From Lytechinus pictus (Eukaryota), in assembly GCF_037042905.1 (NCBI RefSeq), contig NC_087261.1:25172001-25236000 (forward strand): a stretch of DNA of 64,000 bases. Direction: 5' to 3'. The notes under the pieces were generated by a model. The model searched no databases, had not been told where the DNA came from, and saw nothing but the letters and a program-made list of their open reading frames with translations. The position numbers were made by a program, and so were the translations under genes. Positions 1,520 through 62,825 of this stretch are shown one piece after another (position 1 is the stretch's first letter; the number at the start of each line of letters is the position of its first letter).

Positions 1520-1813
1520 TTCTAAAGACAGCTATGTATCCAATACCGCCACAGCTCTCAGTTGGGTCTCCTTGGCATGGAACGGAACAGTCTGAATCTA
1601 CTCCCACTCCATGTCTCGCATAGTTATCACTGGCTACCCCACAATAACATTCATTCCCATTTCCAACACCAGCGTATGTATAGTAAGATGTGATGGACAG
1701 TCGACAAAACCAGATGCAATATGAAATATTTATCGATGCACTAGAAAGTTTGAAGTTGCTAGATAACACTCTGTCAGTTTTGTTATCCTTGAAACATCCA
1801 AGATATCCCTCAC
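1520..1813 (-). CDS. Gene A WSC-domain exon (98 codons)
   Basis: GEGYLGCFKD..RVL..ISYC..FC..YAGV.NG.ECYCG..C..PCQGD..ESCGG..AVF; 8-Cys WSC pattern; ATAG|GT acceptor, A|GTGAG donor. Confidence 0.92.
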
Positions 1814-4800
1814 CTATTATAAAGATGCACGATAAAGTAATGAATTTCAGGATTGAACTTCGAAACGTTAATAATATTTAAAAAAAATATCTTACAATCA
1901 GAACGATATGAACGTCAATTATGTTCAATGTTGCCGAAATATGAAATTAGATGTGAATCCCCTCAAAGCAATGTAAATTACCTAAATTATGAATCTCATT
2001 TTTTTTAGGGGGGTCGAGCTATATTCTTAATACTAGCCAGATCTAGTGAATTAATGATTAATTTCACCAGGGGGCCGTTCTATAAAGCTGTTCGTTAAGT
2101 TAAGAGCGAGTTTAAGAACGACTGGTGAACCTTTCCTACGAGCTTAAACCATCACCAATGAATATACAATTTACCACAAGAAAGGATCACCAGTCGTTCT
2201 TAAACTCGCTCTTAACTTACTTGCTTTATGAAACACCCAACTGGCTTACCACCCAGCAGTAACCTTATATGTTTCTAAAAGCTACTCTGCCTTCATGTCC
2301 CAGGGTGCAAAAATAAAACATTAAAGGACAAGTCCATTCCAACAAAATGTTGATTTGAATAAAAAGAGAAACGTCCAACAAGCATAGCAGTGAAAATATC
2401 ATCAAAATCGGATTTAAAACAAGAAAGTCATGACAACTTCAACTTTCGCTTAATTTCACAAAACAGTTTTATGCACATCCTGGTCGGTATGCAAATGAGG
2501 AAACTGATGACGTCATCCACTCACTATTTCTTTTGCATTTCATTATATTAAATATGACATATTCTAATGTTCTCCTCATTGTCAAGTAAAACAAACATTT
2601 ATTCCTCCCTGAACATGTGGATTTGTTTAGTTAGGTTGTTCCTTATTTTCAAATCTTTAAAAAATGAAATATTGTATAATTCAAACAAAAAAAGGATTTA
2701 AAAAAATAGTGAGTGAGTGAGGGACATCATCAACTGTCTCTTTTGCATGGCACTGACTTGTACATATAACTGCTTTTGTGAAAAATAAGTGAAACTTTAA
2801 CATTCTTATTTTACACCCGATATTGACGAAATTTTCAGCGTTATGCTAGTTTGATTTTTCTCCATTTACTTAAATCAAGATTTTTCTAGAATGGACTTTA
2901 CCTTTAACGGCGGTTCATAGCTTAATGGATAGTAAAGCTATACACCATTTTTTAATAATTTGGCATGCTTAGATCAACAATTATTGTGTACGCAAAGATA
3001 TATTTTTTTTCTATTATTGCATACTTAAATTAATCCGTTAATACATGTATAGGTATTTTGTTTAAGTATTTGTATTGTATTAATTGAACATCATTGACAT
3101 TGTATAGCAAAAAATTGTTCGTATATATTTATTCTCTAGAAAAATGCGAATTATAATGATAAAAGAGAAAAAAAGTCAGACTAATTGGAGAATTTCCGGA
3201 CACGTGCATTTGCTTTCTGGGTTTATTTCGCCTTCTTCCATGAACATAAATAATATATTGCATTTACATTCATTTTGTTTTATTGATTTATAAATCTTAC
3301 ACGAATTTTGAAGAAAAGAATGTTTAATTGAACTGAATTAAGAGAATCAAGCCACTGTACGCCCACAAATGCCAAATGAAAAGTAAAGGACTGGAAATTC
3401 ACTTTCGTTCAAGTAATACCTGCGGCACATCAGTGCCGAAATTCAGTTTATAAAGCAAAAAGGGTTTCTTTTTCACATTTTTATTTTCATTCCCCTTGTC
3501 CCTTACTTTCTGTATTATTTTCCTTGAACGAGCCTGTAGGCTTTAATTTGTATATTGAAAAATATGAAACAAATTGTAAACGTTGGAAATGGAAATAAAC
3601 GAAATTAAGTGAAATGACATAACCAATTTCATTGCTATTAAACATTATTGGCCATCAAGCCTGTGGTATCAACAATCGTTGTTAGAATGACTAAGAAGAG
3701 TCAATATGGCATGTGTTAAACTTTTTGTAACGGAAGTTGTATTTGCCTATCAAATTGACCTGGGTGAATTAATACTTGATCATGTGCACCCTACTGGACT
3801 CCATATTCAATTCACAGAATTGATTCGGATTCAATGTAGTCTGCCTCTAGATATTATTATTGTCGTTTTTGTAATTACCATGACAAGATGCTGCTCCTGC
3901 TGGGGAACACCCCGATGCATGTGATAATGTAGAACATGCTGCGACGTTTCCTTCACCTAGAAATTCAACATAAACATGATAAACAACAATTTATTGATTT
4001 AAGTAAAAAAAAAAAAATTATCCTAACTATTGGAACCAGGCCAATCATACATTGACTTCAGTGGGGCTAATTATGTATTCATGAGGTCATATCTCAGGCC
4101 CCCATTGACCAATTCGCCCCAATTTTGGTAGTGGAGGTATTTCATCATGCTCTACGAAAATATGGTAGCAGATATTCTAAAATGAAAAAAAAAGTTGTTT
4201 GTAACGTCATCAATTCGGTGCTCTACAGTGCGTAGCAAAAAAAAACGGGACAGTTTTGAAAAGTCTATTAAAAAATTGTTTCAAATTATGATATCTATAT
4301 TTTTATGTTAATAGATGCTCTGAAATCTTATCTTTGAAGTGCCATTTAAAAATAAATTTTGTTCATGCTTAAGTAGACACGGAACGTTTTTGTCGGGGGT
4401 TCAAAAAGAGGCTTTTGTCAAAATGGCAGAAATTAGATGATCAGACTTCTTTCTAATCAGCAAACTTCCTTTTAACCTTTTCATTATCTTTGCAATGATT
4501 TTCACATTTGAAGCCCGACCAGATAGGCCTCGCTAGCTTCTTGAAGGGCCATCACGGCGGAACTCTGGAAGCGGAGCTCGATCGACCTTCAATGCAGCCT
4601 GGTTTTTATAGACTTTTCAAATATGTCCCGTTTTTTATACACACTGTATTACAGCTCTGATCGGCGTTGGCGATGCGCTCTTCACCATGTTAACAGCGGT
4701 TTGAAATTATCCATGAACCGCGAACTCTAAGCACCGAAAACTTGTTGGTCATATGCGATATCATCTTAACCCTAATAAGATTGGGCGCTGATTCAGCCCC

Positions 4801-6862
4801 CCTCCCCGCTCGACAGTTGTCGCGAATAAATCCGCCGCGCAATTTTTTTTTTACCAAGTAGCTCGCTGACTTTTTACTTTGAAGTCTCGCGCAAATTTTG
4901 AGACCAAAACTGCGACACCCAGGTACGCAGTTCCAACATTTCATAAATGCATGCAGACCCAAAAAAGTCCCCCCCCCCCCAAAAAAAAAAAAAAAATAAT
5001 AATAATAAATAAATAAATAAAAATAAAAAAATAAATAAGAATAAAAATAAAAATAACGTGAAATCGAGTACAAATCAAACGCAAATTGTGTTTCTTATCA
5101 AAAATTCATATGTATCAGTATTTTTCCTTTACGGATTAAATCAATTAATTTCATTTTTTTTTTACAGTCAAAATAAAGTCCCTGACAGTTTATATAAAAA
5201 AAAAAGGGGGGGAGAAGAAATACATAGAAATTCAGAAAACAATAACATTCCTAGGAAACTAAATGCGATATTGATTTTTTTTATTTGATCAGAGCCCAAT
5301 AAAGAGCATTTGAGTGGCCTTATCTGAGAATTTGATCTTACAGTTTTGTAAATTATGCCATGGGTAACGTGCGTGCCGATTTTCGTCGCGATCGCGCGAT
5401 CGACGGCCAAGATCATAATGGATGCTGAATCACCATCCCCCGCATGTCTTTTTAGGGTTACGAGTTGTGAAAACAAACAAACATCTGTAGGGGTAACCCT
5501 GGTGGAGTGGTCCAACTGCACTCCCCCTAGCTACCCCCCCCCCCTATCAGTTTTATCGGGAGGAGAGACCTGCTGGTCATAAACTCTAAAGAAATTGGGT
5601 AAAAGTGCTCCATGGTGGTATTTATGTGTCCAACCAACATTGGGCATTTCTTTTGGGCATTTTTATTTATCCAGTGTGATGAAAAATTTACCCATTCTAA
5701 AGTAATTGCTGCTTATTTTTTCACTTTACTGGTCAATATGCTACACGCATTTGGTTAAAATTCTGCCCCAAATTGGTTGGACACATTCATTCATTCATTT
5801 ATTCATTTTTCCAACAAAATTTATAATGCAATAATTACAATAAGTAAAACATAACATCAGAAAATATAAATGACATAAATATTTAAATAAACCAAATATA
5901 AAGAATATACACCTGATACAGAAGATAATATTTCCAATTTGATACTAACAATATGCAAGACATAATTACTCTCGTGCTGGTAAAAAATTTTGAAAATCTG
6001 TGTGTGAAAATGGCAATAAATGAAATAAATACATAGAAATAGAATAAAATAAAATTAAAAATTAAAAAAAAAAGATAAGATTTAAGAAAATGGTCCCCGG
6101 ATTTTTTTTTTGGGGGGGTTGCAACCCCCAACCCCCCCCCCCCCCCTCTAGATCCGCTTCTGTGTATTACCTCCGTTACAATCTAATCCAATGTCAGGAG
6201 TTGAGTTCTGTCTAAAAGGTGTGGTCTGCATTGCTAGACTAGCTCCCGTGAATCCTAACTGTCTGCAAATGACCATGACATCATTAATGTCAAGATTTAT
6301 TCCACATGTCGTCTCCCAATTGCCGCCATCTTGCCTGATCTCTACTGTACCTTTATTAGACGATGGACCTCCAACCAGTTGTACATCTACGAAGAAGAGG
6401 GAAATGGGATAGAGTCTGCTGTTAGGTTCTTTATGACATACGGAACCATGAGTTCCAACTATACACTTTACATCATAATTGACATTCATATACACAGAAA
6501 ATATCTGCATATTGCATTCTTGCATATGAAAGTTCGACTAAGTGGCATCTATATTATTTTGGGTTATAATTTGCCTTCTTTTCATTGTCTGTAATCCTTT
6601 TCTTTCAGTAGTTTTAAAGTACTTTCCAAGACCCCTCCTTAGTAGAGCCGACGGGCATCAACTCATCAAGCAAAGGCGTTCTATATCCTTTAAGTACATG
6701 GTGCCATTGCAATTAACGTAGCCTTAAGTCCTTTGATACAAATAAACTCATGATACTGGGCATTCTTGGTTTGTTACCTGTAATGACACACCTGACCATG
6801 TAATTACTGTTCTGTATCAGAAGAGTGATTAGGAACGCAAAGTTGATCCGATGCCAATCCAT
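1520..6862 (-). CDS. Gene A (partial; 3' exons lie before window start): signal peptide-SRCR-WSC receptor paralogue
   Basis: Exons 6862-6778, 6386-6171, 3956-3879, 1813-1520; all GT-AG, phase 1, open frame; homologous to exons of B-D. Confidence 0.88.
2071..2240. mobile_element. Palindromic MITE, PIF/Harbinger-like (second copy at ~23722-23903)
   Basis: Long self-complementary arms; flanked by CAG/CTG; empty site present in gene C at ~43449. Confidence 0.7.
2325..2903. mobile_element. Non-autonomous TTAA-flanked DNA transposon (Kolobok-like)
   Basis: TTAA|AGGACAAGTCCA...TGGACTTTACCT|TTAA; related copies at 43533-43960, ~26612-27211 and ~60733 (partial). Confidence 0.7.
3879..3956 (-). CDS. 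Gene A SRCR C-terminal exon (26 codons)
   Basis: GEGNVAACSTLSHASGCSPAGAASCH; TTTCTAG acceptor, G|GTAAT donor; missed by the ORF track. Confidence 0.88.
4226..4646. mobile_element. Tc1/mariner-like MITE
   Basis: TA|CAGTGCGTA..AAAACGGGACA ... TGTCCCGTTTTTTATACACACTG|TA. Confidence 0.75.
6171..6386 (-). CDS. Gene A SRCR N-terminal exon (72 codons)
   Basis: [35 protein letters not shown]; SRCR motif. Confidence 0.92.
6778..6862 (-). CDS. Gene A signal-peptide exon
   Basis: MDWHRINFAFLITLLIQNSNYMVRCVIT; ACAG|GTAAC donor; candidate upstream acceptor at 6892-6893 would imply a 5' UTR intron. Confidence 0.8.
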
Positions 6863-9187
6863 TACTGGTTCACATACGATCACCCGTGAATCTGCAGATC
6901 AATTAGAATTTGGGGCTAATATCAGAAGTATAACTTAAATAGCGGTGTTGGGACGTTCTGAGCAGAAAAATATATAAACATATTTCAGGGGCTAACCATT
7001 GTGTGTTATCAATGGTTCCCCTCCTATCCTTTGCCTGCTTAGAACGTACAATTCATGCTCACTAAACTTATTTCATATTTCAACGATCTATTAATGTTTT
7101 ACACCAACTTATACTTACAAAAATAGTGTTAACTTCATAAGAGATGAAACTACAGTCTGCCTTCTTTGAAACCAGTGACCAATACCGACAAACAGGGACG
7201 ACTAATTCGTGATGCCTTTGGATCTTTGATAGGCGTACAAGACGTACCTTAATAGGATGGTGTACAAAACTAGAAATTCGATGGGAGACACGTCACAACC
7301 GACACAACCTTCTGCTGGCCGATCTAATATAACAGTGGATTTTGGATGAAAATTTTTTATCCAAATACGACAAGATGTGAAGTAAAGCGGACAAACCATG
7401 AACAAGTTCTGAATTTGTGAACTTTGGTAACAATGAAGGTTTTCCTGCATGACCAAATGTTATATTGTGATGTAGGGCAAGAACTCATCGATTTGTTCTA
7501 ATACATAACATGACTAATGTATCATATTTATCAAAAGCTATTTGAGCAGAATAATTTATTTTTAACACCATCTATCCCTTTTCTATTGCTTTTTGCTTGC
7601 TGTCCGAAGTGCATGACGAATGGACAATAGTCCTTATCACTTAACAATTTACTCAACGTTTTTATCATTATTATTATGAATATTATTGTTATTATAGATT
7701 CAATTATACTGATATTATTATTTGTTATTGTTATCATTATTATTATCATTATTATTGTTATTATCATTATTTTTATTTGATATTTACATAGTCATAATCG
7801 TATTCCATTGAATCTTGTACCATGGTTCTCATCACATTATTTTCCCTTTTTTTCCCTCGCACACAACTCAATTAACAACCTAGGCTAAATTACGCTTTAT
7901 AATAGAGCCCCCTCCCCCCCCCCTACACACACACACAGAAGAACTGGGGAAATTAATTTACAAGAAAAAATGATAAATCTGAAAGTTGCATGGACGCTTT
8001 TTTTTCAGTCAAAGACAAACAATAAGAAAGTCAAATACATTTATAAAATGGCACAGAAAGAATACTCAGGACAAAAATGAAATAAAAATGAAAAATAAAA
8101 GGGATGATTGTCTCTATCGCATGTCACTTACAAAAAAGTTTGTAATTTCAGAAATCAGTATTCTTACTAATTTGTTACTGTTTCAACAGTCACAAATTTC
8201 TCATTCCTTGTTTGATTCTGAGAAACTTCTACCACTTTGTTGTTATTACGCCCCCCCCCCCTTAATACACATCCTTATTAACATTATCATTCTTATCATA
8301 AGAATCTATTATATATTGCAGTTCGAGCATATATAATAATCGAAAAGAAATATATTTCCCTCGTTATACAGTATATGCATGTTCATGCATACATTCATAA
8401 TTTTGATAGTGACAATAATACATGTAAGTTGAATGATTTTGTAACGATTTACCCTAAATTGACAATCGAAATAATAAAAATATAATTACCATTATTCCTA
8501 ATTAATTATCCATGTCTTTCTTGTCTCTTTCAATCAATGCAATAATCATCTGCTAACAAGTTAAAACAGCTGTCGTGTATGATTATACTATACTGGCGCT
8601 ACTACTGTTGCTTGTCACAATACTGTACAACATTTTATCTATGAATCCTGCAAATTAACCGTTGGATCGTTGACATACAGGTGCACGGGTGTCAGAAAAC
8701 CCACAACCAAGAATCCACCTTTCGCCTCGTAAACGATATGGGATAAGACTGGGTTTCACAAAATTACCATCTTAACGAATATGCAGCAGTCCAATTACGA
8801 ATGTCAAATTGTATTTAACAAATATTCCATAGTATCACAGAAAGCACAGTTTGAGAAACATGGCCTAGAACATTGTTCATTCTGGCACTCCTTTTCATTT
8901 CATAAAGAAGCAGCCTCTTGTTTGATTTATATACAGTCTACCCTAAACTATTGAACCGATCACTAAAGAATAGGGGATCCGAGTCAATTTCAAAATCAAG
9001 TTCCTCTTTTAGGGACACGAATTCAACATAATGTTAATAATTATCTTGTTTGTAAAACGTTTGATAATCATGAATTGGCCATTTATCGTATAACTGGTTT
9101 CCCCAATAAATAAAAGTACTTCAAACCTATACTTCGCCATTCGTATATCTAAAGAGTCTTATTATTATCACCATTTGCTATCATTAC

Positions 9188-9279
9188 AGTAAGAAGCAAT
9201 AGTAATAATAACGGAAGTAGCAGTGGGAGGAGGAAGAATAGTAGTAATGTGAGAAGTAGTAGTAGTAGTAGTAGAAATA
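9188..9279. repeat. (AGT)n microsatellite running into a gap
   Basis: Degenerate AGT repeats before the gap at 9280-9633. Confidence 0.85.
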
Positions 9280-10660
9280 NNNNNNNNNNNNNNNNNNNNN
9301 NNNNNNNNNNNNNNNNNNNNNNNNNNNNNNNNNNNNNNNNNNNNNNNNNNNNNNNNNNNNNNNNNNNNNNNNNNNNNNNNNNNNNNNNNNNNNNNNNNNN
9401 NNNNNNNNNNNNNNNNNNNNNNNNNNNNNNNNNNNNNNNNNNNNNNNNNNNNNNNNNNNNNNNNNNNNNNNNNNNNNNNNNNNNNNNNNNNNNNNNNNNN
9501 NNNNNNNNNNNNNNNNNNNNNNNNNNNNNNNNNNNNNNNNNNNNNNNNNNNNNNNNNNNNNNNNNNNNNNNNNNNNNNNNNNNNNNNNNNNNNNNNNNNN
9601 NNNNNNNNNNNNNNNNNNNNNNNNNNNNNNNNNCAATCCATATGCACTTCATATTCAAACTCTCATACACAAGAAACGAATGTATACATGTATACATGAT
9701 CATTCTCTACAAAACATTATGCTCGAAATAGTCACACAAATAATAATTTTTACAATAGAATCTTTTATTACGAATATATAAAGTGATAACAGTGAAAAAT
9801 AAAAGAAAGCGTACACTATCGATGACAAGATGGAATGATAGAGATATCTTAAAGATAAATGCCAGTTGTGGTAACGATCTCAAATGACTTTTTACAGAAT
9901 CTAATATAATGACCACCCGAGTGTCTGTTTGTATGAATAAAATATATGTGCCAAAGGATTCTGGAAGAAATTGTGTAATTGCTGGGAAATAAGCAGAATA
10001 AGCGCGGATTCGGTCACTTCCGGATCCGTCGGGTCTTTATTCCAGCAATAATAATACACTGTCCCACGTGTGCCTATCTGTGTTGGCGATATTCAGTGTG
10101 ATCGTTTTTTAGCTTAGATTTTATGGTTTCACAAAGTTCAGTTTATGTTACTGTACCAGATCTAGATCCACAATGATATAGTTATACTTAACCTAGCTTG
10201 TATAGACGGGCTAATCATCCTAAAACGGATAGTAGACACAATTTCGACCTCCTTTCACTTATCAATTTAGTACAAATTACATATCTCTGTATGTTTTTCT
10301 TAATATTTTCCATTATTTTTTATGTTATGAAATATTCAGTTTTATCATTAGGCCTATAATTGTTGTTGTTGTTAATGAATAAGTATTGGAAATATCTTCA
10401 TCAATTGAAATATCAGAATAATGAAAATTATCACTCTGCTAAAGCAACCATCTCTTGATGTAATGTAACCATTCAAACAAGAATCCGTCCATCTCAAATT
10501 ATAAGACAGACCTGCACAATTAAGGTGATCACATACTACCAATGTAATGTAAACTCAATATTAATAGCTATGACGTCAAGTTAGCTACGCCTTTATCAAT
10601 CTTTTCAAAGTTATTTCTTACACAGTAACCTGGACATACAACTTTTTTTCTCTCTTTATG

Positions 10661-12004
10661 AAACAAGGCAAACGCCAAGCGTTGTCTCGCCTGCATATTG
10701 CAGTCATGAAGAGACTGCATGTCAAAACTACATGTATGCTATATGACTTAGATGGACCTCTGTTACGAGTTTGGCGATCCCACCTCGAAGCTATAGTCAT
10801 GGAAAGTTCATTGACCTTTGACCTTAATCAAATTCAACTCACATTTGAACTTGACCCGCACCTCCAAAAGATAGACCTCTTGTATGAATTTGGCAATCCT
10901 AACTCGAAGATATAGAAAGGAATTGTGTGTACAGCACAGCACAGTGCCAGTCATGGAAAGTTCATTGACATTTGACCTTATTCAAATTCGGCTCACATTT
11001 GAACTTGACCTGCACGTTCAAGAGATGGACCTCTGTTATGAATTTGGCGATCTCATCTCAAAGCTATAGAAATGTATTGTGTGTACAACACAGCACAGTG
11101 CCAGTCATGGAAAGTTCATTGACATTTGACCTTTGACCTTATTCAAATTCGACTCATATTCGAACTTGACCTGTGCCTTCAGAAGATGGACCTCTGGTAT
11201 GAATTTGGTGACCCCACCTCGAAGCTATAGAAAGGTATTGGGTGTACAAAGTTATTATGTGTACAACACAGCACAGTGCCAGTCATGGAGAGTTCATTGA
11301 CCTTTGACCTTTGACCTTATTCAAATTCGACTCATATTCGAACTTGACCTGTGCCTTCAGAAGATGGACCTCTGGTATGAATTTGGTGATCCCACCTCGA
11401 AGCTATAGAAAGTTATTGGGTGTACAAAGTTATTATGTGTACAACACAGCACAGTGCCAGTCATGGAGAGTTCATTGACCTTTGACCTTTGACCTTATTC
11501 AAATTCGACTCATATTCGAACTTGACCTGTGCCTTCAGGAGATGGACCTCTGGTATAAATTTGGTGATCCCACCTCGAAGATATAGAAAGTTATTATGTG
11601 TACAACACAGCACAGTGCCAGTCATGGAGAGTTCATTGACCTTTGACCTTTGACCTTATTCAAATTCGACTCATATTCGAACTTGACCTGTGCCTTCAGG
11701 AGATGGACCTCTGGTATGAATTTGGTGATCCCACCTCGACGATATAGAAAGTTATTGTGTGTACAACACAGCACAGTGCCAGTCATGGAAAGTTCATTGA
11801 CCTTTGACCTTATTCAAATTCGTTTCATATTCGAACTTGACCTGTGCCTTCAGGAGATGGACCTCTGGTATGAATTTGGTGATCCCACCTTGAAGCTATA
11901 GAAAGTTATTGGGTGTACAACACAATTGTTGACGACGACGACGACGCCGACACCGGAAATAGTGATACCTATGTCTCGCTCCGCTACGTAGGCGAGACAA
12001 AAAA
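10661..12004. mobile_element. Helentron-associated (HINE/pearl/Tsp-like) element with 7 tandem 154-178-bp units
   Basis: Sub-terminal inverted repeat TTGTCTCGCCT/AGGCGAGACAA, 3' stem-loop, (GAC)n; inserted in an A-run that is empty in C (~38025) and D (~55025). Confidence 0.75.
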
Positions 12005-14447: not shown

Positions 14448-15201
14448 TTACACAGAATACAGTTCGTTTTCAACCATCTCCATTTCGTCGAACTGATCAC
14501 CGGGAAACGAGTCATTAGCTTTAGCGTAGAGACCCTGATCACCATCGTATCCATCCGGCTTTCCTCGGGATTTATCGGGCATCGCGTACAAACTGCCGAC
14601 ATCTTCCGAAGTATCGTCCGAAGGGTTGTTCCGGTTCCCATTCTTATCTGGCATAGCATACAGACTGTCCATATCTTCCGAGGTGCCGTTTCGTTCGTCG
14701 TTCTTATCGGGTGCAGCGTAAACGACGCTCATTCTGTCGGCCATCTTCGCCGAGGTGTTTGGCTGCTTAGGATTTTCAAAAGAAGAGAAGGGTGCAATTC
14801 CGAGATTAATTTCGTCGTAGCCGTCATGTGCTCCGTTTGCGTTCTTGTCAGGTGGGGCGTAAAGGACGCTTAATCGGTCGTTGCTGTTCTGTTTCACCGC
14901 AGTGGCGCCACGTGAAGGATTTGGCGTCGGTTCATCGTCTGGGGTCTCATCCATTGTCCCCTCATATATATTCGATGATTTCCTGGGATTCAGATTTACA
15001 AGGAGAATGTTCTTGTTTCCTCTAGAAGAATTCGCGTTACTCTGTGCTTGTGCTCCAGGTTGGAAGCCTCTGGTAGATGCATCTGTCATTGCACCGTTGG
15101 AGATACCGAAGTCATTTATTTCATCATTCGCTGGAAGCCTGCTAACTGGAGTCAAAGTTGCTCTTTGTGAAGAGACAATACCCTTCGTCCTTTGCTGTGA
15201 C
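14448..15201 (-). CDS. Gene B cytoplasmic tail exon
   Basis: TTACAG|G acceptor; repeated YAxPDK motifs; ends [11 protein letters not shown]. Confidence 0.92.
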
Positions 15202-51106: not shown

Positions 51107-51596
51107 AGTAAGTAGCAGTCGTAGTAACAGAAGTAGTAGTAGTAGTAGTAGTAGTAGAAGTAATAGTAGTAGTATTAGTAGTAGTAGTAGTAGAAATAAT
51201 AGTAGTACCAGTAGTAGTATTAATAGGATTATTATTAGAAGTAGTAGTAGTAGTAGAAGTAGAAAAAGAAGTTGTAGTAATAGCAGTAGCAGTAGNNNNN
51301 NNNNNNNNNNNNNNNNNNNNNNNNNNNNNNNNNNNNNNNNNNNNNNNNNNNNNNNNNNNNNNNNNNNNNNNNNNNNNNNNNNNNNNNNNNNNNNNNNNNN
51401 NNNNNNNNNNNNNNNNNNNNNNNNNNNNNNNNNNNNNNNNNNNNNNNNNNNNNNNNNNNNNNNNNNNNNNNNNNNNNNNNNNNNNNNNNNNNNNNNNNNN
51501 NNNNNNNNNNNNNNNNNNNNNNNNNNNNNNGTAGAAGTATTAATATGATTAGTAGTTCTAGTAGTAGTAGTAGTAGAGTAGTAGTAGTAGTAGTAG
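51107..51596. repeat. (AGT)n microsatellite (resumes at 54000-54191)
   Basis: AGT/TAG repeats around the gap at 51296-51530. Confidence 0.9.
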
Positions 51597-53999
51597 GTGT
51601 GTTGCTAAACTTCGAGTCACGAGTTTCGAGTCTCGAGTTTCCCAAATTTCATTGGAATTGGTCATTAAAGACCCTTGCTTTCAATTGCTTTTAAGCCGCT
51701 ATTATCCACATATGAAGAGCTCACTTGCAAAAGGGGTTAGGTCCATTTTTTATCAAATTTGATTTTTGGTCTCAATGTATAGATTTTTAGTAGCTCTATA
51801 AGATGATACCAAAGAAAAGTTGAAATTCCTATTTAAAAGTGATCAAAAATGGCAAAGAAAACTCACTTTTTTTTCAAAATGGGTTAGGTCCATTTCAGTT
51901 TAGTTGCAAAAGGGATTAGGTCCACACCGAATTTTTTTTGGAAAAAAATATTTTAAAAAATATGAATAAAGGTAGATTTCTTTTATACCCAATTTTATGT
52001 TGTCATGGTAGGGAATCTTGAAAATTTAGTTTCGCATAAGAATGTGCAATATAGGAGAATTAAAAAAAATGATTTTCTTGGAGTGGACCTAACCCCTTTT
52101 GCAAACAAACTCTTCTGAAGAGCTCATTTGTCAAAAGGGGTTAGGTCCATTGTTCATAAATTTTATTGTTTTCTGTCTTAAAACCTCTAAATGTTTAGTC
52201 GCTATGATGAAAACAAAGAAAATTTGAAATTTACATGAAAACGTGAAAAAAGTGGCAAAGAAAAATCACTTTTTTAATCAAAATAGATTGGATTCATTTC
52301 AGTTTACTTGCAAAAGGGCTTAGGTCCACAATGATCATTTTTTTAAGAACTTATAGAAAAAAATTGAAGACAGGTAGATTTCATTTATACCCAATTTTAT
52401 GTTCACATGATAGGGTAGTACATCATGACAATTTAGTTTCTCATAAGAATATTGCAGTAAGTGAGAATAAAAAACATGTTTTTTTCTCAGAATGGTCCAA
52501 AGTAGACCTAAGCCCTTTTGCAACTAAACTCTTCATATTAGCGAAATTATGCACGTAAAACACTTTTACTCTGGTGCCGCTAAAATCTTCTAAGGACATA
52601 AAAGGAAATGAAGTTGACATGTTGCAAGCTTGTAATTCCATTTGGGCAAAATATGCTTTATCTTTTCTCAGATAATCGAAGCGAGCTACATGTATGCAGT
52701 AGAAGATGATTTAACTTCTCGATTGGACGATTATAAAAAGATATGCAGTTAAAGGCTGGAGAGTACGAGTATGTAGCCTCCCGCGATTAATATAGAAATT
52801 ATTGCTAAAAACACTATGAATAAATTTAATTTAAAAAGGGCTCTATAATGACATAAACAAAAATAGTAGGAAAAATAATTTTGATGGCTTTGTAAAAACA
52901 ATTTCAAGGTCTATCTACTACTACTCTCAACAAAGTTTAAGAAATCGAGTGAGAAAGACGAGACTCGAATTTTGTAAAAATTGTAAATAGATACAATTAT
53001 AATATTTTGTTAATAGTAGTAGATAGGCCCTGACATTCTATTTACAAATCAATCAAATTTATTGCTCCTAGTATTAGTATTAAAGAACAGCGCTTTTAAC
53101 TCGAATTTTGAAAAATTCGAGTCTCGCCTTTCTCATCCGAATTATAATATTTTGTTAATAGTAGTAGATAGGCCTTGACATTCTATCTACAGATCAATCA
53201 AATTTATTGCTCCTACTAGTAGTATTAAAGGACAGCGCTTTTAACCCGAATTTTTGAAAAAATCGAGTCTCGCCTTTCTCGTCCGAATTATAATATTTTG
53301 TTAATAGTAGTAGATAGGTCTTGACATTCTATTTACAAATCAATCAAATTTATTGCTCCTACTATTAGTATTAAAGGACAGCGCTTTTAACTCGAATTTT
53401 GTAAAAATTCGAGTCTCGTCTTTCTCATCCGATTTCTGATACTTTGTTTATAGTAGAAGATAGACCTTGACATCCCTTTTACAAAGCAATCAAAATTATT
53501 TATTCTACTATTGGCGGAAACGTGTATTTAACGATTTTTGTTTATGTCATTACAGAGCTTTGTTTTTTCCTTATTCCTTTGATTCATAATGTTTTAGCCA
53601 CAATTTCTTCATTAATCGCGGGAGGCAAACACTTCTCATGGCTATTCTCCAGCCTTTAACTGCGTAACCTTTCATAATCATTCAATCGAGAAGTTTAATC
53701 ATATTCTCTTAAAGCTCGCTACGATTAGCTGAGAAGAGGGTAAGCACGTTTGCTCCAATCAATTCTTAAAAAGAATTACAAGCTTGCAACATATCAATGT
53801 CATTTCCTTTTATGATTTTAGCGGCATCAGAGTAAAAGTGTTTTACGTGCGTGACAGAAAGATTTCGCAAATACGTGAGAAAAAGCGGCTGAAAAGTAAT
53901 AAAGTCTTTAATAACTTATCCACTGGAATGCTGGCAACTCAAGACTCGAGACTCGAATCTCGAAACTCGAAACTCGAGACTCGAAGTTTAGCAACACAC
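51597..53999. mobile_element. Foldback-like non-autonomous TIR element inserted in a (TAG)n microsatellite
   Basis: TIR GTGTGTTGCTAAACTTCGAGTC; internal inverted arms ~52550-52990 / 53390-53850; ~146-bp tandem repeats. Confidence 0.8.
51714..52534. mobile_element. Head-to-tail dimer of a ~400-bp MITE flanked by ATAT (Sola-like 4-bp TSD)
   Basis: GAAGAGCTCA.TTGCAAAAGGGGTTAGGTCCA ... TGGACCTAACCCCTTTTGCAA..AAACTCTTC, present twice. Confidence 0.65.
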
Positions 54000-56356
54000 T
54001 AGTAGTGGTAGTAGAAGTAGTAGCAAAAGTAGTAGTAGTAGAAGTAGTAGAAGTAGTAGAAGTAGTAGAAGTAGTAGTAGTAGTAGTAGTAATAGTAGTA
54101 GTAGTAGGAGGAGGAGGAGGAGCGAAGTGGCAATGAAATATAAAATACTGCATCGGTATTAAAAGATATGTAGAAAATATAGTAGTAGGAGNNNNNNNNN
54201 NNNNNNNNNNNNNNNNNNNNNNNNNNNNNNNNNNNNNNNNNNNNNNNNNNNNNNNNNNNNNNNNNNNNNNNNNNNNNNNNNNNNNNNNNNNNNNNNNNNN
54301 NNNNNNNNNNNNNNNNNNNNNNNNNNNNNNNNNNNNNNNNCAATGAAATATAAAATACTGCAGATATGTAGAAAATAAAGTTATTTATTTGCTATAAATA
54401 AAAATGAACCTGTGCACCCTAATAAATATACCAGCCCATATATAATTCATCTATTATTTCAAGGCAGTTCATATTCAAACTTTTATACACAAGAAACGGA
54501 TGCATACATTATCATTCTCCACACAAAAAAATTGTGCTAAAAATCATCACATAAATAAATTAGTTTCAAAATGGAATCTTTTATTAACAACAGAAATAGT
54601 AATAAAAGTGAGGAATTAAAATGCAAAATATCGATTACAAGATGACATGATACAGATATTTTAACCAAGCTTCTGTAGAATATCGAGACGGGCTAATCAT
54701 CCTAAAACGGATACTAGACACTATTTCGACCAATTTCTAAGCTCCCCTTAACTTATCAATTTCGTACAAATTACATATCCGTTTTCTCAATACTTTCTAT
54801 TACTGTTTATGTTATCAATTTATTTTAATATATATATTTATATACATATACATGCACAATTAAGGAGAGCACATACTGTAAACGTAATGTAAACTCAATA
54901 TAAAAGCTATGACTTTACATTGGCTACGACTTTATCAGTTCAAAATACACGTAGATTGTGATGCCGATATGAAATACAGTAACTCTGACAGAAAATCCTT
55001 GTAACAACTTTAATTCCTCTTCATGAAAAAATGAAAGAATGCATTGGGGTAATTCATACTATATATTCCCCCCATTATTATACTATGAATTACATGGACT
55101 TAAATTGAATCCAGATCAGAATGATGTAAACAGTGACCAGTCAAACACTGGCTATAATTTAAACGCAAAACCTATATTTCTTAATCTCAAAGGATTTAGA
55201 TTCAAATATTTTCAGATTTAATCTATCAAAATTCAGTAATTGACTGCTCCCTAATGACAGCAAGTCTGAATTCAAATTTAAGTGTAAAGATTCAAAAACA
55301 AGGAATTATTACAGGAATCCTTGAATGATACAAATATGTATACTGTGCGTGAATAACATGTCATTTTCGAAATCAAAGGTTTTCCCCCTTTTGTATATCC
55401 TACATTTTACAATCTTGTTTATAAAAATGTATGAAAATATATATCAAACATTAGAAAACAATTCTGAATAGAATGCGTAGTAAGCAATGCGATAACGATA
55501 ATATTACGTAGTACTGATATCTACCTGATTTGCAGAGTGACCCGTTCACCAAAATAAAAATAAGTGCTTTAACATCAACCAATACAGTAGGTAAGAACAC
55601 AACCAAGATCAGTTTAAATAGGTAATATCATTTATGCCTCGTTTACATTTGCTATGTATTTCTGTCATCTTTCATGGTTATATGAATCTACTGCATAATC
55701 AGATAATTGATCCACTACAATTAGCTTTGATCACTGCATAAACCATTCAGCACATTGCGTTTTTCAGCGAACTAACATAAGATATTAAGATTTCCCATAT
55801 TCTGCATAATATATGTCTGAAGTACACAAAAGTGGCTATTTGTCAGAGCGTATTTTTATAAGCATTATTAAAAAGAGATGTATACAATGGATCCCCATAT
55901 CTTCATCATTGTTCTTTGCTGCAATTTTGGTTGTTATGCATCGTCAAAATACATTAGCTGATCAGTTAGTGTAATCATCGTGAAGATGAAATTATCCTTA
56001 TTTTAGTACAAAAAGAAGATGAATTTATCTTTTCTGTTGTTAATATAGTATTTGTACAATTATGTTTGTATTTATTAGTATTCATTTGACAATTCTGTAA
56101 TAAGATACATGTACATTTCTACAACTTGTTTCCTTTTGTTTACATTTTATGTCTTGAAGGAACGCAGTTTTTGAATGAACAGGAAAGTGTAGAGAAATTA
56201 AGTAAAAGCAAAATAATAATTGTGTGGATGATTGTGTACAGCTTTGTAAATTCCAAATCTAACGATCGTTTTTACGACATTCTAAAACAAAAATATTTTT
56301 AGAAAATTTTTCATTCATTTACCATATTTACTGTTACTTAACCAACACCTCTTTAT

Positions 56357-57113
56357 CTACATAGAATACATTTCGTTTTCAACCATCTCCATTTCATCAA
56401 ACTGATCACCAGAAAAGGAGTCATTAGCTATAGCGTAGAGATCCTGATCACCATCGTACCCATCCGGCTTTCCTCGGGATTTATCGGGCATCGCGTACAA
56501 ACTGCCGACATCTTCCGACGTATCATCCGAAGTGTTGTTCCGGTTTCCATTCTTATCTGGCATAGCATACAGACTGTCTATATCTTCCGAGGTGCCGTTT
56601 CGTTCGCTGTTCTTATCGGGTGCAGCGTAAACGACGCTCATTCTGTCGGCCATTCTCGCCGAGGTGGTTGGCTGCTTAGAATTTTCAAAAGAAGAGTAAG
56701 GTGCAATTGCGATATTAATTTCGTCGTAGCCGTCCTGTGCTCCGTTTCCGTTCTTGTCAGGCGTGGCGTGCAGGACGCTTAATCGGTCGTTGCTGTTCTG
56801 TTTCATCGCAGTGGTGCCACAAGAAGCATATGACGTCAGTTCTGTGTCTGGGATTTCATCCATTGTCCCCTCATATATATTCGATGGTTTCCTAGGATTT
56901 AGATTAACAAGGAGAACGTTCTTGACACCTTTAGAAGAACTCGCGTTACTGTGTGTTTGTGCCCCAGGTTGGAAACCTCTGGCAGACGGTGCCTCTGCAA
57001 CTGCACCGTTGGGGATACCGAAGTCGTTTATCTCATCGTATGCTGGAGGCATGCTGACTGGAGTCAACGTCGCTCTTTGTGACGAGGCGATACCCTTTGT
57101 CCTCTGCTGTGAC
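56357..57113 (-). CDS. Gene D cytoplasmic tail exon
   Basis: Homologous to the B and C tails; ends MEMVENEMYSM*. Confidence 0.92.
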
Positions 57114-60100
57114 CTTTAATGGAATATTGGATACAATTATGGAAAATAAGAAATATTCATAGTTTTCATAACGGGGTATCCTACATTTGTTCCTTTGTTC
57201 TTGTTTGTTTTTATTATGACATTGATATGGTTTCTTTTCAATTACAAGGTTGAGCAGTATCTGGTTGCTTAATTTTCCATTAATGTACCAGTGTTTAAGA
57301 AAGGCAAAAACATGACAAAGCAAATTCGAGAGTTGTTATCAAATTTAGCTTTGTTTTGATACCGACTTAATATCGTAGCAATCGTAATCTTTGATATATT
57401 TTAGAATGATTTTACATGTGAGGAATTCTAACAGTTATTCTCAAATTTATATTTGTTGTACTACCATTTTATGTATTAAATAAAATTGCTACAGACCTTC
57501 TCTTTCTGATACATGCGATGGCGACGATGATTATGATGATGATTATAACAGCAGCAACAGCTCCGCCAATCCCTGCATATAAGCCTGATTAAATCAACAA
57601 TACCGATCATTCCACGAGATTATTCATTTAAAATGATCATATAAGTATTCTTAATAGGGAACTGTGACAAACCTGCGTGAAGTAACATGTTCCTGAGTGA
57701 AGCCTATTTTCAAGTTTTTAAATTCAGTTTGATTAGTCTGCAACATACATTCATCACACTCTAATTGCAGTACGATGGTTGTCATGGGAGTTTTCTTCAT
57801 CATGATTTGTTGTAACCGGACTTGAGTTGCATTGGAATTGGAATGGATTGGGACTTGTTGATGAACATCATTTGATCACTATTAACTCAACACAAATTAC
57901 ATCCATTATCATTATAAATTTATCATTAATATTTCTTTCATTTTTAGTATTATCATCACTATCATTATCATCTTCATTATCATTATCGCTATTAGGTTTT
58001 GGTGTAAATATGATTCCTTGCTATTATGAAAAGATAGGGAAAAATCAGAGAAATTATAAAATAACGAAAGCACAAGAAGTGTAGGAATCACGTAAATCAA
58101 ATTTGTAAGGTATTCATTAAACTAGTTGAACTACCTGTGCTATTTCCCGCTGTGGGAAGATTGGACGTCCCTTGAGTTTTCAGAGATGATGAAACTGATG
58201 ATGACGATGACAACGATGTCGAAATCACAATTTCGTTACTTGTTGTGGCGGTCTGGTTGACGGTGACGGATGTCGTCGGTGGTGGTGAGGTAACTGTGTC
58301 AGATCAATAAACATTTACATTGAATTCAGGACCAAATTTTTCTATCATTAGTCAATGGATAGAAATACATAAGTTGGCAATTTGAGCTAACAAAGTAGCG
58401 ACATGTTTATCGAGATTAGCCCAGCTCATTGTGCCATCATTGTAGATTAAGCATGATAAGGAGAGACGATTATTTCTTGTTTGAATATTACTTGGTAATT
58501 TGTTCAAGTTGCATTCGAAAGGACCATGAATTCCATTGACGGCCATTTTTTTTTACAACAGTAACAATAGAGAATATTAAAAAGCTGCCGTTTATGCAAT
58601 CATACACTTTCCCTCACCCTAAGAACCATGTCCTTTTTAAACAAATTACATGTAAAATCAACTGCATGTGCCAGATCCGGTTAAAGTTATATCACACCCA
58701 GTTTGTATTTTTTCTGAATTATTTAACATTATAAATGCTATGATTTCTTTGATTCTTAATCATAATGCAATTTTCTCTGCTATCTGTATGATAAGTGAAA
58801 TAAAGATATACAGAAATCAGGAACTGAAGTGATGGGAAATATAATTCTTGAATTGAACCTCAAGCATCATCAATTATCATGACATATGTAAATGCAAAAG
58901 CATGGTAACCATGTATTGCTCTACTATACATTGTCTTCACTTGCCTGTGTTTGGATATTAGCCATCGAAATATTTCTATGGTGTTTAGTCCATTAGTCCT
59001 ATTAATTCAAAAATTTAACTCTAATATTTCAAAACCCATATTTTTTCTAAAAATGATGATTCTGCATATTATGAAGATGCATTTCCACAATAGGTAGGGA
59101 AACATACCCATTGATTCAGTTGGCGTATTCATCGTTGTCATCGTGTCGGCTGATACTGTATTTCCATTTAAACGTTTTAAGGGAGTGAGACAATGAAATA
59201 TAGTGAAGGGATCAAATTAACACTTCTTCAGTCGAAATGAATAGCAAGCATTATAAACAAATTGTTAAATGTGAACGATTTAAAAAATAATGCACATGCG
59301 AACCAAACGATATATGGTATTGATTGAAACGATTGTGCGTGTTCGTTTAGATTTTGTCTCATAAGCAGATATTGTATTGCATTTATTGATTTTCTATTCA
59401 CACTAAAAAAAATATAACATTAAAAAGTACAATATATCACAGAGCATGTCAGTCATAATAATTCAAAGGAAAAATGAATGATAAATTGGAACTTAGCTAC
59501 ATAAAACTGGCTTTGTTTAAAATGAATAACAAAAAAACTAAAACAGAACGGATATATCCTCCTTTGATATGTTGATAGGCTGGGATAAAAAATTAAAACA
59601 TGATGTATATTAAGTTTTAAGGCGATGTTTGGTACATATTTCTGAATATTCAGTAATTCAGTGAACATGCTGTACTTACTGATGGATTTGCCTATACAAA
59701 AAGATACTTATACATAATTTTGTTTGTGTCTTGATAGACACCCCTCCCCTGAGATTAAAAAATATACAAACCTGGGCCCGTTTCCACAAAAACTATCATT
59801 ACTGTAGCTTCACTGGCGGGTCCAGGGTGGGCTCACAGCCGGCCCGTGCCCCCCCCCCCCCTCCTCTTTGAGAGGCACAATTTAACTTTGTAATGTAAAA
59901 ATGCCGTTAAAACAGAAGTGTGCCCCCCTCCCCCAATTTTTAAAGTGAAGACCTTTCTTTTTTTCTTTTTTTTTCTTTTTTTTTTTTGCTTGTCAAATAT
60001 TTTCTTGGACGAAACCCCTTATTTTGGGTTAAAAACCTTCTTCTTTTTTTTTGCTTGCTTGTCAATTTTTTCTTCGGAAAAATGTGCCCCCCCCCCCCCT

Positions 60101-62825
60101 TCGAAAAATCCTAGATCCGCTCCCGGGTAGCTTTGCCATGCAATGCTAAATGGACATATAATCCTTGACTTTGATCGGTTGTTGACCAATACCATAGTAG
60201 CTATTGGAGGGCAAAGTTACCATAATAGTAACTTTTATGCAACGGGGCCCAGAACCTTTAGGTTTCAGTTAAATCGAACAAAATTAGATGTACCTCCTTT
60301 AGTAAAAGCAAGTTGATACACCCCTTCATTGTCTTGGGAATCAAAATCATTGAATTTAAGAATGATACTCACTGATAAAGACAGCTATGTATCCAATTCC
60401 ACCACAGCTCTCGGTAGGGTCTCCTTGGCATGGATATTGACAGTTCTTATCTGACATGTCTGGTCCTACTCCATGTCGAGTATAATTATCACTGCCTTCA
60501 CCACAGTAGCATTCATTTCCATTTTCAACACCAGCATAAGTATAATTAGCTGTGGTAGACTCATTACAGAACTGGATGCAATATGAAATGGTAATCGGTG
60601 AACTATCTGTCAGACTTTCGCCAGACAACGCCCAGTCATTCCTGATATCCACAAAGCATCCAAGATATCCATCACCTATATGAGAAAGAACGATAACGTT
60701 ATAATGCTTGTTTAAGCGTGTTGGACATTTAAAGGTCAAGTCCACCCCAGAAAAATGTTGATTTGAATAAAAAGAGAAAAAATCAAAGAAGCATTATATT
60801 GAAAGGTTTTACGGTAAACACCATGTATGTAGTCCTAAAAAGGACTGTTTGTTATTCTTTCTTGAATATATGTTAGCTCTGAAAAGAACTGTTATCGACG
60901 TTTCGACCAGCGTGTTCTGGTCGTCAAGTTGGTCACGCTGGTCGAAACGTCGATAACAGTTCTTTTCAGAGCTAACATATATTCAAGATAGAATAACAAA
61001 CAGTCCTTTTCAGGACTACATACATGGTGTTTACCGTAAAACCTTTCAATATTCTCTCCACCATGGAAACCTTCAAAGATCATCAAACAAGCATTATGCT
61101 GAAAATTTCCATTTATTTTAATTTAGGATAAAAGAGCTTTTTGATTAATTGTCTTGCTCACGGGCATATAGGTGCCCTGGCCGGGGATCGAACGCTGAAC
61201 TTTTGGCCACGGCACCGTTTATTGGATAGATTCACCAATATTTCATCGAAATTTAATTCCATCTGGAGCCTTATCATAAATAAAATATCTGCGTATTTTC
61301 GTCTTCTTTAGAACTTCTCAACCATGGAATGGGCTGGAAATTTCAGGACATGATCTTTGTAGGCCGATTCCGATTACTATATAAAATCCGTGCTAAAATT
61401 GTCATTTCAAAATGAAATAATAACATTACCAAGACAGGGAGCTAGATTTGAATTTAAATCTTAAAGGACGGAAATGCGTGTTGCACAATTCAAAAGTACA
61501 AGCTAAATATTTTTGTTTGTTTCATCCCTATTAATTAGTTTAATAGATTGGTAGTGACCTTAAAATATGTTTCCAAATTTTTCTAAGTACAATATATGTA
61601 CCATCGCACAAATACCATGTTTTATTTAGTATGCTCAATAAAATGAAAAGCATAATTTAGTTTTATTTTAAGGTGTTTACACAAATTTGACGGAAACGTT
61701 ACCATGACAAGAAGCTGCTCCTGCTCGAGAACATCCCTCTGTATTTGAGAGCGAACACTCAGACAGGTATGTGTCATCTGACATATCAAATTACAGAATA
61801 TGACACCAAGTAATTAGAATTTCATCATACCTTTATCAAACGTGGCAAAAATGAATGTGAAATGTAACGAACAAGGCACAGTAAGCCGTATTCGAGAGCA
61901 CAACCCTCTTTCTTGCATGTACCTGAAAAATTATTGATTTAGATTTGCACATTGTTTACTGATAAAATGAGAGTAAAATTTGAGGTTGCGCATCACACAA
62001 AGAATACTGATAAGCGCAGAAAATACCTCTAATTAGTGGCCATACATGTAGGTCTATCATAAAATCTCATAGACCATCGGCTTCGGAAGATGAAGTTTGT
62101 TTGCCCCGATTTCAATTCAACGTAATTTAGGCTATATCCATTTCAGTAGTCACGGTAGTATGAATAATTCATATTTATCAAATAAATTTAACCGAAACGC
62201 CATTACTTTCATCACAAAATAGCCCATGGTTGGGAGTTGAATTCTGTCCATAAGGCGTCTCCCGTATTGCTCTATTTGCTCCTTTGAATCCCAAATGTTT
62301 GCAAATTACTACGACATCGGAGGTATCAGTATTGGCCCCACATGTTGTCTCCCACGTCCCGTTGTCTATCTTGATCTCAATTGTCCCTTTATTAGAATCT
62401 GGACCGCCAACAAGTTGCACATCTGTCAACAGAATGCAAAGAGATGGAAAATTACTAAATAAGTCCTTTGCAAAGTCTCGTTCACGTTCTAGTTTTATAT
62501 TTGAAATTATAAACTTTCATTTAATATGTAGAGATCTAAAAAGACAATTAAACCTGAATTTTTTTAGGCAGCGTTTGATGGCATTATATGTTTTGTTATA
62601 AGTATTTATTGATAACCTTCCAAGGAGTTTTCACGCATCATTATGGTTTCGAACCTGGGTTACCGGACTAAGAGAAAACCGCCCTACCAACTGTATATAT
62701 TATGATTCAAATTGGTGAGATTTTGAATGAGAGTACAAAGGAATATGGTTACCTGTTATGGCACAGATGCTGAACCGGATCCAAAGAATCACTAACAAGA
62801 CAATGGTTATCCAATTTCGATTCAT
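56357..62825 (-). CDS. Gene D: complete SRCR-WSC-mucin stalk-TM receptor, 572 aa
   Basis: Exons 62825-62753, 62422-62207, 61777-61703, 60675-60373, 59155-59108, 58293-58135, 57584-57497, 57113-56357; total 1719 nt = 573 codons including stop. Confidence 0.88.
57497..57584 (-). CDS. Gene D transmembrane exon
   Basis: LYAGIGGAVAAVIIIIIIIVAIACIRKR. Confidence 0.9.
58135..58293 (-). CDS. Gene D Ser/Thr-rich stalk exon (53 codons)
   Basis: [53 protein letters not shown]. Confidence 0.85.
59108..59155 (-). CDS. Gene D 48-nt linker micro-exon
   Basis: ISADTMTTMNTPTESM. Confidence 0.8.
59775..60250. mobile_element. Harbinger-like MITE carrying a hAT-like insertion (~59811-60126)
   Basis: GGGCCCGTT../..AACGGGGCCC ends; GTAGCTT duplicated around the inner element. 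Confidence 0.55.
60373..60675 (-). CDS. Gene D WSC-domain exon (101 codons)
   Basis: GDGYLGCF..ISYCIQFC..YAGVENGNECYCG..CQYPCQGDPTESCGG. Confidence 0.92.
60796..61052. repeat. Near-perfect 119-bp inverted repeat with a 19-nt loop (Penelope-like remnant)
   Basis: Arms 60796-60914 and 60934-61052; flanking direct repeat ATCAAA(G/C)AAGCATTAT. Confidence 0.85.
61703..61777 (-). CDS. Gene D SRCR C-terminal exon
   Basis: NDTYLSECSLSNTEGCSRAGAASCH. Confidence 0.88.
62207..62422 (-). CDS. Gene D SRCR N-terminal exon
   Basis: [41 protein letters not shown]. Confidence 0.92.
62753..62825 (-). CDS. Gene D signal-peptide exon
   Basis: MNRNWITIVLLVILWIRFSICAIT; ACAG|GTAAC donor. Confidence 0.8.

Follow-up and report, generated by a model that had tools for sequence, protein, structure and literature searches.

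Sea urchins carry hundreds of SRCR genes that are assumed to encode immune receptors, and how these receptors signal is largely obscure. A 64-kb stretch of the Lytechinus pictus genome (contig NC_087261.1, forward-strand positions 25,172,001 to 25,236,000; hereafter the window; G+C ~34%) poses this question for one family: it holds four head-to-tail SRCR-WSC paralogues, A, B, C and D, all on the minus strand, and we asked what kind of receptor they encode and what its cytoplasmic tail might do. In B, C and D, eight coding exons encode a signal peptide (exon 1), an SRCR domain (exons 2 and 3), a WSC domain (exon 4), a stalk (exons 5 and 6), a transmembrane (TM) segment (exon 7) and a tail (exon 8). 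Pfam matches and the spliced models bear out the architecture that an earlier, sequence-only reading had proposed for the window, namely SRCR, WSC, mucin-like stalk, TM and kinase-less tyrosine-motif tail in a duplicating cluster. Judged by its sequence, the family is echinoid specific and made up of type I single-pass membrane receptors. The reading we favor, to which we give about an even chance, is that of a glycan or glycoprotein receptor with a multivalent pYxxP docking tail (pY, phosphotyrosine), as suggested by motif conservation and established specificities.

The tail exon of B (14448–15201, minus strand; homologues at 39490–38743 in C and 57113–56357 in D) encodes about 250 residues with no Pfam match and no kinase. 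It contains three to four [LV]Y[AT]xP sites and ends in MVENE[LM]Y[ST][VM], and the B–D tails share three to four copies of the unit [ED]-D-[FLVM]-x-x-L-Y-A-[MK]-P-D-K. A phosphotyrosine-rich tail had been claimed for the whole family; the tyrosine-motif tail is present in B, C and D and not in A, which has a different, 82-residue tail. Across 18 tails we counted 71 YxxP sites with the consensus [ED]-D-[FLVM]-[GSD]-x-L-Y-A-[MK]-P-D-K-[NST], leucine occupying the −1 position in 53 of them, alanine the +1 position in 63, aspartate the +4 position in 52 and lysine the +5 position in 62. In an alignment of ten echinoid proteins ranging from Diadema to Lytechinus, two motif units, one further LYA and the C-terminal M-V-x-N-E-L-Y show no variation, and single sites have been lost in individual genes (Tyr is replaced by His in D, by Ser in C and, at the YSSF position, by Phe in B). 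Each echinoid tail carries 3–5 YxxP sites, and the cytoplasmic region of one crinoid protein carries 7, so that all have at least three.

A scan of the L. pictus genome with a DNA pattern for LYA[KMI]PDK returned 19 occurrences, compared with 0 in the reversed control, nearly all of them in the tails of TM proteins: 13 in the cluster, 2 in distant family members and 2 in the tails of other TM proteins (one with an Ig V-set domain). Two single-exon open reading frames (ORFs), L022:4284-6911 (minus strand, 876 aa) and L021:3093-5195 (plus strand, 701 aa), encode TM proteins with one LYAKPDK each in the tail; one has an Ig V-set domain, and the other has no Pfam match. Beyond echinoids, a search with the Diadema tail retrieves Ig-domain TM proteins from two crinoids, Anneissia and Antedon, and the reverse search returns Diadema; the crinoid Ig-type receptors and Diadema share a repeated ADFGDLYAKP.K with equal spacing (BLASTP E 7e-13).

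This unit points to candidate partners. The substrate consensus of Abl is I/V/L-Y-x-x-P/F, as in abltide, EAIYAAPFAKKK (PMC4532999), and pYxxP is the consensus of the Crk SH2 domain; three or more YxxP sites per protein are reported to be rare, and Crk's own Abl site is YAQP (PMC2689226). LYA[MK]PDK matches the Abl consensus and, if phosphorylated, would match that of the Crk SH2 domain. Crk-pYxxP recognition is older than animals, and choanoflagellate TM proteins with YxxP repeats bind Crk (PMC5043372); the L. pictus genome also encodes an Abl-type F-actin-binding domain. We propose that ligand binding would cluster the receptor, the ligand more likely being a glycan or glycoprotein recognized by WSC than a polyanion recognized by a non-canonical SRCR domain; that the L-Y-A-x-P tyrosines would then be phosphorylated by Abl- or Src-class kinases; that the resulting pYxxP sites would recruit Crk/Nck-class SH2 adaptors; and that these adaptors would couple the receptor to the actin cytoskeleton for adhesion, engulfment or migration. 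In this respect, the tail would be comparable to that of a transmembrane adaptor or to the substrate domain of p130Cas. A feature search of the ESM Atlas with the tail gave only weak neighbors (0.76–0.83), among them the tails of PAG/LIME1/SCIMP and poxvirus A36R at 0.76, which serve as a lead only. Short-tail partners of these receptors, described below, might signal differently or serve as decoys.

Several observations weigh against this proposal. The putative kinase and adaptor assignment depends on a short linear motif, and the known specificities of Abl and Crk do not account for the strict aspartate at +4 and lysine at +5, which may reflect a different partner. We found no strict immunoreceptor tyrosine-based activation, inhibitory or switch motif (ITAM, ITIM or ITSM) in the B–D tails, and their tyrosine content (3.6–5.8%) is not extreme. 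An AlphaFold2 (AF2) model built from a 10-sequence alignment has a mean predicted local distance difference test (pLDDT) score of 38.6, with the WSC domain at 65–77 and everything but this domain and the TM helix below 50; it shows a helix at the TM and a tail at 20–30 without secondary structure, and because the model is of low confidence overall, the apparent disorder of the tail is weak evidence. Finally, expression of D was low in the RNA runs examined, whose tissue labels are coded.

We next consider the ectodomain that this tail would serve. All four copies of the SRCR exon match PF00530 (E 2e-11 to 5e-10; 42–53 bits against a gathering cut-off of 26.1), which places them in the SRCR superfamily; the first part of the domain lies at 25985–26200 on the minus strand in B, with homologues at 6386–6171, 48428–48213 and 62422–62207. 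Group A SRCR domains have 6 Cys and are encoded by two exons, and group B domains have 8 Cys and are encoded by one. With 6 Cys and a phase 1 split between exons 2 and 3, the family domain is group A-like. All four copies of the WSC exon likewise match PF01822 (E 3e-18 to 3e-15; 56–66 bits against a cut-off of 27.8), with 8 Cys in the exon 4 translation (20548–20844, minus strand, in B; homologues at 1813–1520, 43207–42914 and 60675–60373), and we found no other Pfam domains in the proteins. The closest solved relatives are CD163, PIT54, CD5L and CD6 for SRCR and Kremen1 for WSC (E 1.5e-15). The stalk (exons 5 and 6) is mucin-like, with 54–64% Ser/Thr/Pro and an N-S-T sequon at its end; exon 7 (15594–15681, minus strand, in B; homologues at 39963–39879 and 57584–57497) encodes one TM helix that begins with an invariant LYAG and is followed by basic residues.

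The sequence-only reading had assigned ligand binding to SRCR as well as WSC, and for SRCR the canonical form of this claim fails. DMBT1 has a dual acidic cation site (D1019, D1020, D1058, D1059, N1081 and E1086) that mutagenesis showed to be needed for ligand binding and that is conserved across ligand-binding SRCR domains (PMC7043408). Placing these residue numbers by the spacing given in that paper, we found in an alignment with canonical SRCR domains that the acidic cluster is absent from the urchin family: C-G-[IMAV]-N stands in place of C-D-D, and the E-D of EDAG is either missing or substituted. Diadema alone keeps one Asp of the site. Because SRCR lacks its cation site while WSC keeps its eight cysteines, WSC is more likely than SRCR to be the ligand-binding module, as far as sequence can tell. 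Animal carriers of WSC include Kremen and polycystin-1, as had been stated, and the literature adds the WSCD sulfotransferases; a third carrier that had been named, the xylosyltransferases, could not be confirmed.

To place the four genes in context, we examined the flanking sequence, 80 kb on the left of the window and 60 kb on its right. The full cluster comprises ten SRCR-WSC genes over ~190 kb, reaching ~72 kb beyond base 1 on the left and ~54 kb beyond base 64000 on the right, so that the four genes recognized earlier are real but make up only part of it. All ten are on the minus strand, and two tail types are interleaved among them. Six are long-tail genes: B, C and D inside the window, two others on its left and, on its right, one diverged "type 1-prime" gene that is the orthologue of S. 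purpuratus LOC100888657. The leftmost of these has no intron 7, and its TM and tail share a single 302-aa open frame (~71.4–72.2 kb left of base 1). The other four, including A, are short-tail genes with a different stalk, a TM containing ..GLGEGVVII.. and an 82-residue tail with FYHDI and GYYSSQIY. A and three other units had appeared to be truncated, tail-less genes; a search with a short-tail model revealed their own stalk, TM and tail exons. For A, three more exons lie ~1.2–2.75 kb beyond the left edge of the window, open and spliced in phase, and complete a 412-aa short-tail (type 2) protein whose stalk, TM and 82-aa tail differ from those of B–D and which lacks YAxPDK repeats.

The two types are linked by a segmental duplication: 1518–15719 is collinear with 42912–57624 in blocks of 74–93% identity (mostly 82–93%), the left breakpoint coinciding with the exon 4 donor of A and C and the right end lying in exon 7 of B and D. 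Given this left breakpoint, A combines the ectodomain half of a C-like gene with a short-tail half. A and C, with short and long tails respectively, have 82–93% nucleotide identity through their 5′ halves, so that, as in paired receptors, neighboring genes have near-identical ectodomains and different tails. An SRCR tree mixes long- and short-tail genes in both well-supported Lytechinus clades and pairs D with its short-tail neighbor U77163. Together, these results demonstrate that ectodomain and tail halves have been exchanged by segmental duplication. The basic TM residue of short-tail partners in paired-receptor systems is lacking here: the sole charged residue of the short-tail TM (..GLGEGVVIIILSV..) is a Glu at its outer edge.

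The cluster is one branch of a larger, chromosome-wide expansion, since this one 32-Mb contig, ~4% of the assembly, accounts for 69 of the 87 WSC-domain exons in the genome, which form about ten clusters between 6.4 and 31.7 Mb. Distant family members on the same contig were found at 14.25 Mb (at least two WSC exons, then TM and tail) and at 31.40 Mb (SRCR-WSC-TM-tail).

The sequence-only reading also called the family diversifying. Pairwise ratios of nonsynonymous to synonymous divergence (dN/dS, Nei-Gojobori) are 0.36–0.47 for SRCR, 0.19–0.65 for WSC and 0.37–0.52 for the tail; being below 1 in every domain, they show that B, C and D are under purifying selection and do not sustain that description. 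Synonymous divergence is a mosaic, the WSC of B being old (dS 1.2–2.2) and its SRCR and tail young (dS 0.2–0.3). The sole hint of diversification comes from A and C (1520–6386 vs 42914–48428), in which exons 2–4 differ by 16.8%, intron 3 by 9.8% and the upstream spacer by 11.5% (exons against intron 3, Fisher p ~1e-5); here dS is also high, at 0.29, and the excess divergence of the exons could come from selection, from local gene conversion of the intron or from both.

These observations allow a broader proposal, a real possibility though not the probable outcome: (A/E)DFGxLYA(K/M)P(D/I)K may be an echinoderm-wide phosphotyrosine module, as old as the crinoid-echinoid split and a functional counterpart of ITAM/ITIM, combined with ectodomains of unrelated kinds (SRCR-WSC in urchins; Ig in crinoids and in one or more urchin genes), and the cluster may be a paired-receptor system that swaps ectodomain halves, with ectodomain exons changing faster than the surrounding non-coding DNA.

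An immune role of the family is possible. In its specific form, a diversifying coelomocyte pattern-recognition family that would bind microbial glycans through SRCR and WSC and signal through an ITAM-like tyrosine tail, we consider it rather unlikely. Sea urchins have a greatly enlarged set of SRCR genes, which are regarded as immune receptors (PMC10855680); the tandem cluster, with its birth-and-death and module swapping and its long and short tails on shared ectodomains, resembles vertebrate paired receptors; the nearest non-echinoderm WSC matches are fungal carbohydrate-binding proteins; and the ectodomain exons of A and C have diverged faster than intron 3 and the upstream spacer. All domains, however, have the low pairwise dN/dS given above, the canonical SRCR cation/ligand site is absent, no basic residue of the kind typical of activating partners occurs in the short-tail TM, and the type 1-prime member has one conserved copy each in Lytechinus and Strongylocentrotus, unlike a fast-turnover gene. 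The tails themselves are divided. C and D contain YxxI-x6-YSSF, and a third tail type on the SRCR-WSC ectodomain, in the S. purpuratus paralogues LOC100889431 and LOC105438137, has strict ITAM spacing (YTSL-x9-YEDI, of the form YxxL-x9-YxxI), but the second tyrosine of the ITAM-like element is Phe in B. The YTSL-x9-YEDI type was not found in the L. pictus cluster. Among related tails, Diadema has an ITIM-like LYYSSV, and the type 1-prime tails have an ITSM-like TYYSSV.

A second alternative, which we think quite unlikely, is that these are endocytic, scavenging or purely adhesive proteins, whose tyrosine motifs would act unphosphorylated, in sorting or as a PDZ-type ligand at the C-terminus (Tyr at −2, hydrophobic last residue), and not in SH2 docking. 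Consistent with this, the nearest relatives with solved structures are CD163 and other SRCR proteins, adhesion molecules have mucin-like stalks of this kind, and the invariant C-terminus ...NELY-x-(V/M/L/I) resembles class II PDZ ligands. However, YxxP does not qualify as a YxxPhi sorting signal, its +3 residue being Pro, and the crinoid proteins share the repeat yet differ at the C-terminus. A 12-residue unit repeated 3–5 times with an invariant L-Y-A-x-P-D-K is instead typical of multivalent docking, as the phosphotyrosine docking reading would have it.

We identified splice sites by eye and then assembled spliced models for B, C and D, each of which has 8 coding exons, every intron GT-AG, identical phases and zero internal stops, giving proteins of 592 aa (B), 616 aa (C, including 60 X) and 572 aa (D). 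Gene B (14448–27341, minus strand) consists of exons 27341–27257, 26200–25985, 24283–24206, 20844–20548, 17004–16966, 16818–16597, 15681–15594 and 15201–14448; gene C (38743–48892, minus strand) of exons 48892–48808, 48428–48213, 45022–44945, 43207–42914, 42159–42118, 40865–40563, 39963–39879 and 39490–38743; and gene D (56357–62825, minus strand) of exons 62825–62753, 62422–62207, 61777–61703, 60675–60373, 59155–59108, 58293–58135, 57584–57497 and 57113–56357. The in-window part of gene A (1520–6862, minus strand), also with GT-AG sites and an open frame, comprises exon 1 (6862–6778, signal peptide), exons 2 and 3 (6386–6171 and 3956–3879, SRCR) and exon 4 (1813–1520, WSC). A repeat analysis of the window located four copies of the SRCR exon (6152, 25966, 48194 and 62188), four of the WSC exon (1518, 20546, 42912 and 60371) and three of the tail exon (14551, 38837 and 56460; ~750 nt each), and pairwise comparison showed the stop-to-stop pieces to be collinear in order across all four gene regions. 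The translation of B exon 8 is a 99.6% match to a public L. pictus gene model. The earlier claim of four head-to-tail paralogues with 8 coding exons in B–D, shared phases and open frames thus stands, for C outside its gap, and the ends it gave are exact: 1520 is the end of A exon 4 and 62825 the ATG of D.

The gap in C lies at 40626–40805, within exon 6 (the Ser/Thr stalk), and is the only one of five assembly gaps to touch coding sequence; the other four are intergenic (9280–9633, 35826–35957, 51296–51530 and 54192–54340). Both flanks are open in the frame set by the adjoining splice phases and resemble the paralogues, and the corresponding stretch of B is poly-Ser. The size of the gap is merely estimated, so the open frame of C stands for either flank and not across the gap.

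To look for expression, we used four L. pictus runs (~70–83 Mb of contigs each) that contain the complete D tail exon, comparing two of them, together with two raw RNA-seq runs, against 56830–62829. Transcript contigs contain every one of the seven junctions predicted for D, at exactly the bases expected from the model and bounded by CT..AC on the plus strand; these spliced contigs also establish that the runs are RNA. Three of the seven junctions recur in a few raw RNA reads, whose first mates lie on the plus strand, which fits a minus-strand RNA. Exon 5 of D (59108–59155, 48 nt) is a cassette exon: in both contigs and reads, an exon 6-to-exon 4 joint that skips it in frame occurs alongside its inclusion. 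The WSC exon of A was absent from the four RNA-contig runs that contain the D tail and present in one other run of unspecified type. That the genes are decaying duplicates or annotation artifacts without function is hardly credible and largely refuted for D: exon 6 of C does contain an unread gap, the WSC exon of A is missing from those runs and public models vary in the exons they include, but A, B and D are fully open, C is open on either side of its gap, splice sites are canonical, D is spliced as predicted, dN/dS is below 1 and orthologues exist in four echinoid genera.

Several other features of the window deserve mention. A very deep RNA signal at 60630–60829, in intron 3 of D, comes from a common interspersed repeat, with only sub-threshold Rfam matches. 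Its core of ~50 nt also occurs near 2338, 26624, 43546 and 47137, and its RNA word depth of ~30,000 with hundreds of loose ends indicates a repeat carried by many transcripts. The stalk exon of B at 16597–16818 is largely poly-Ser, and a poly-Asp ORF on the opposite strand (16575–16874) is an artifact of the ORF list. Between B and C, ORFs at 31185–31886 and 34718–35077 (both plus strand) resemble, from their translations, fragments of retrotransposon reverse transcriptase. Spacers contain tandem arrays at 10811–11927 (period 154–178 nt, 6 copies) and 52961–53543 (period 146 nt, 4 copies), and repeats with a period of 9–12 nt flank the gaps at 51296 and 54192.

To determine how widely the family occurs, we searched 1.84 billion representative sequences by phmmer with the B tail and recovered seven proteins, of which the five named are from sea urchins and two are unnamed ENA sequences; no vertebrate protein matching the tail was found in this search. 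Word-indexed searches gave related models in L. pictus, L. variegatus, S. purpuratus and Diadema setosum. NCBI Gnomon names such models "uncharacterized," "WSC domain-containing," "neurotrypsin-like," "lysyl oxidase homolog 3A-like," "CD6 isoform X3" and "DDB_G0271670-like." We found no published paper on the family when searching the literature by LOC identifiers, motif strings and WSC domain. A 2024 survey of the SRCR superfamily counted 36 WSC domains (8.96%) among S. purpuratus SRCR genes, which makes WSC one of the commonest partner domains, and named tandem duplication as a driver in several species (PMC10855680). The domain pair has therefore been catalogued and the family left undescribed, so that the earlier claim of novelty holds for the literature, not for the databases, in which Gnomon models already exist for four echinoid species.

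If the proposed mechanism is right, the family would give the sea urchin SRCR repertoire a concrete link to predicted signaling partners, Abl/Src kinases and Crk/Nck-type adaptors. It is also a tractable system, with a small ectodomain (one SRCR, one WSC) on a strongly conserved tail and natural short-tail counterparts, in a species in which gene knock-outs are feasible. The motif held in common with crinoid Ig-type receptors suggests a signaling unit shared among echinoderm receptors, which could help to sort orphan receptor repertoires; if the motif is instead an ordinary docking site on an adhesion protein, the finding would be a useful annotation only.

CD6 and CD5 resemble the urchin receptors in being type I membrane proteins in which an SRCR ectodomain is linked to a long tail without an enzyme domain; the CD6/CD5 tail is unstructured, and its phosphotyrosines dock SH2 adaptors. 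One S. purpuratus isoform is named "CD6 isoform X3," and CD6 is among the PDB sequence matches. However, the ectodomain of CD5 and CD6 contains three SRCR domains of the 8-Cys group B type and lacks a WSC, whereas the urchin family has one 6-Cys SRCR over two exons together with a WSC, which places it outside CD5/CD6. The tails have no sequence similarity, and the acidic ligand site that is kept in CD6 domain 3 is absent from the urchin family (PMC7043408). The p130Cas/BCAR1 substrate domain and choanoflagellate TM proteins share with the urchin tails tandem YxxP in a disordered cytoplasmic region, a Crk SH2 consensus when phosphorylated (PMC2689226, PMC5043372). p130Cas differs in being cytosolic, in having SH3 and FAT-like domains and in using mostly YDxP, whereas the urchin unit, a putative Crk site, is L-Y-A-[MK]-P-D-K in only 3–5 copies on a receptor tail. 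Kremen1/2 and polycystin-1 likewise carry an extracellular 8-Cys WSC on a membrane protein, and the Kremen WSC participates in protein (Dkk) binding; lacking Kringle/CUB or PKD/REJ modules and having a different tail, the urchin family falls outside Kremen (Kringle-WSC-CUB).

Within echinoderms, the cluster genes belong to the sea urchin SRCR expansion, for which the existing survey provides counts and does not include this architecture, the tails, the paired short-tail members or expression (PMC10855680). The vertebrate paired receptors KIR, LILR and SIRP differ from the urchin family in that B–D have no canonical ITIM/ITAM, the short-tail members lack a basic TM residue and the domains are unrelated. 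They nevertheless parallel its organization, with clustered genes, near-identical ectodomains and alternative long and short tails arising from unequal recombination.

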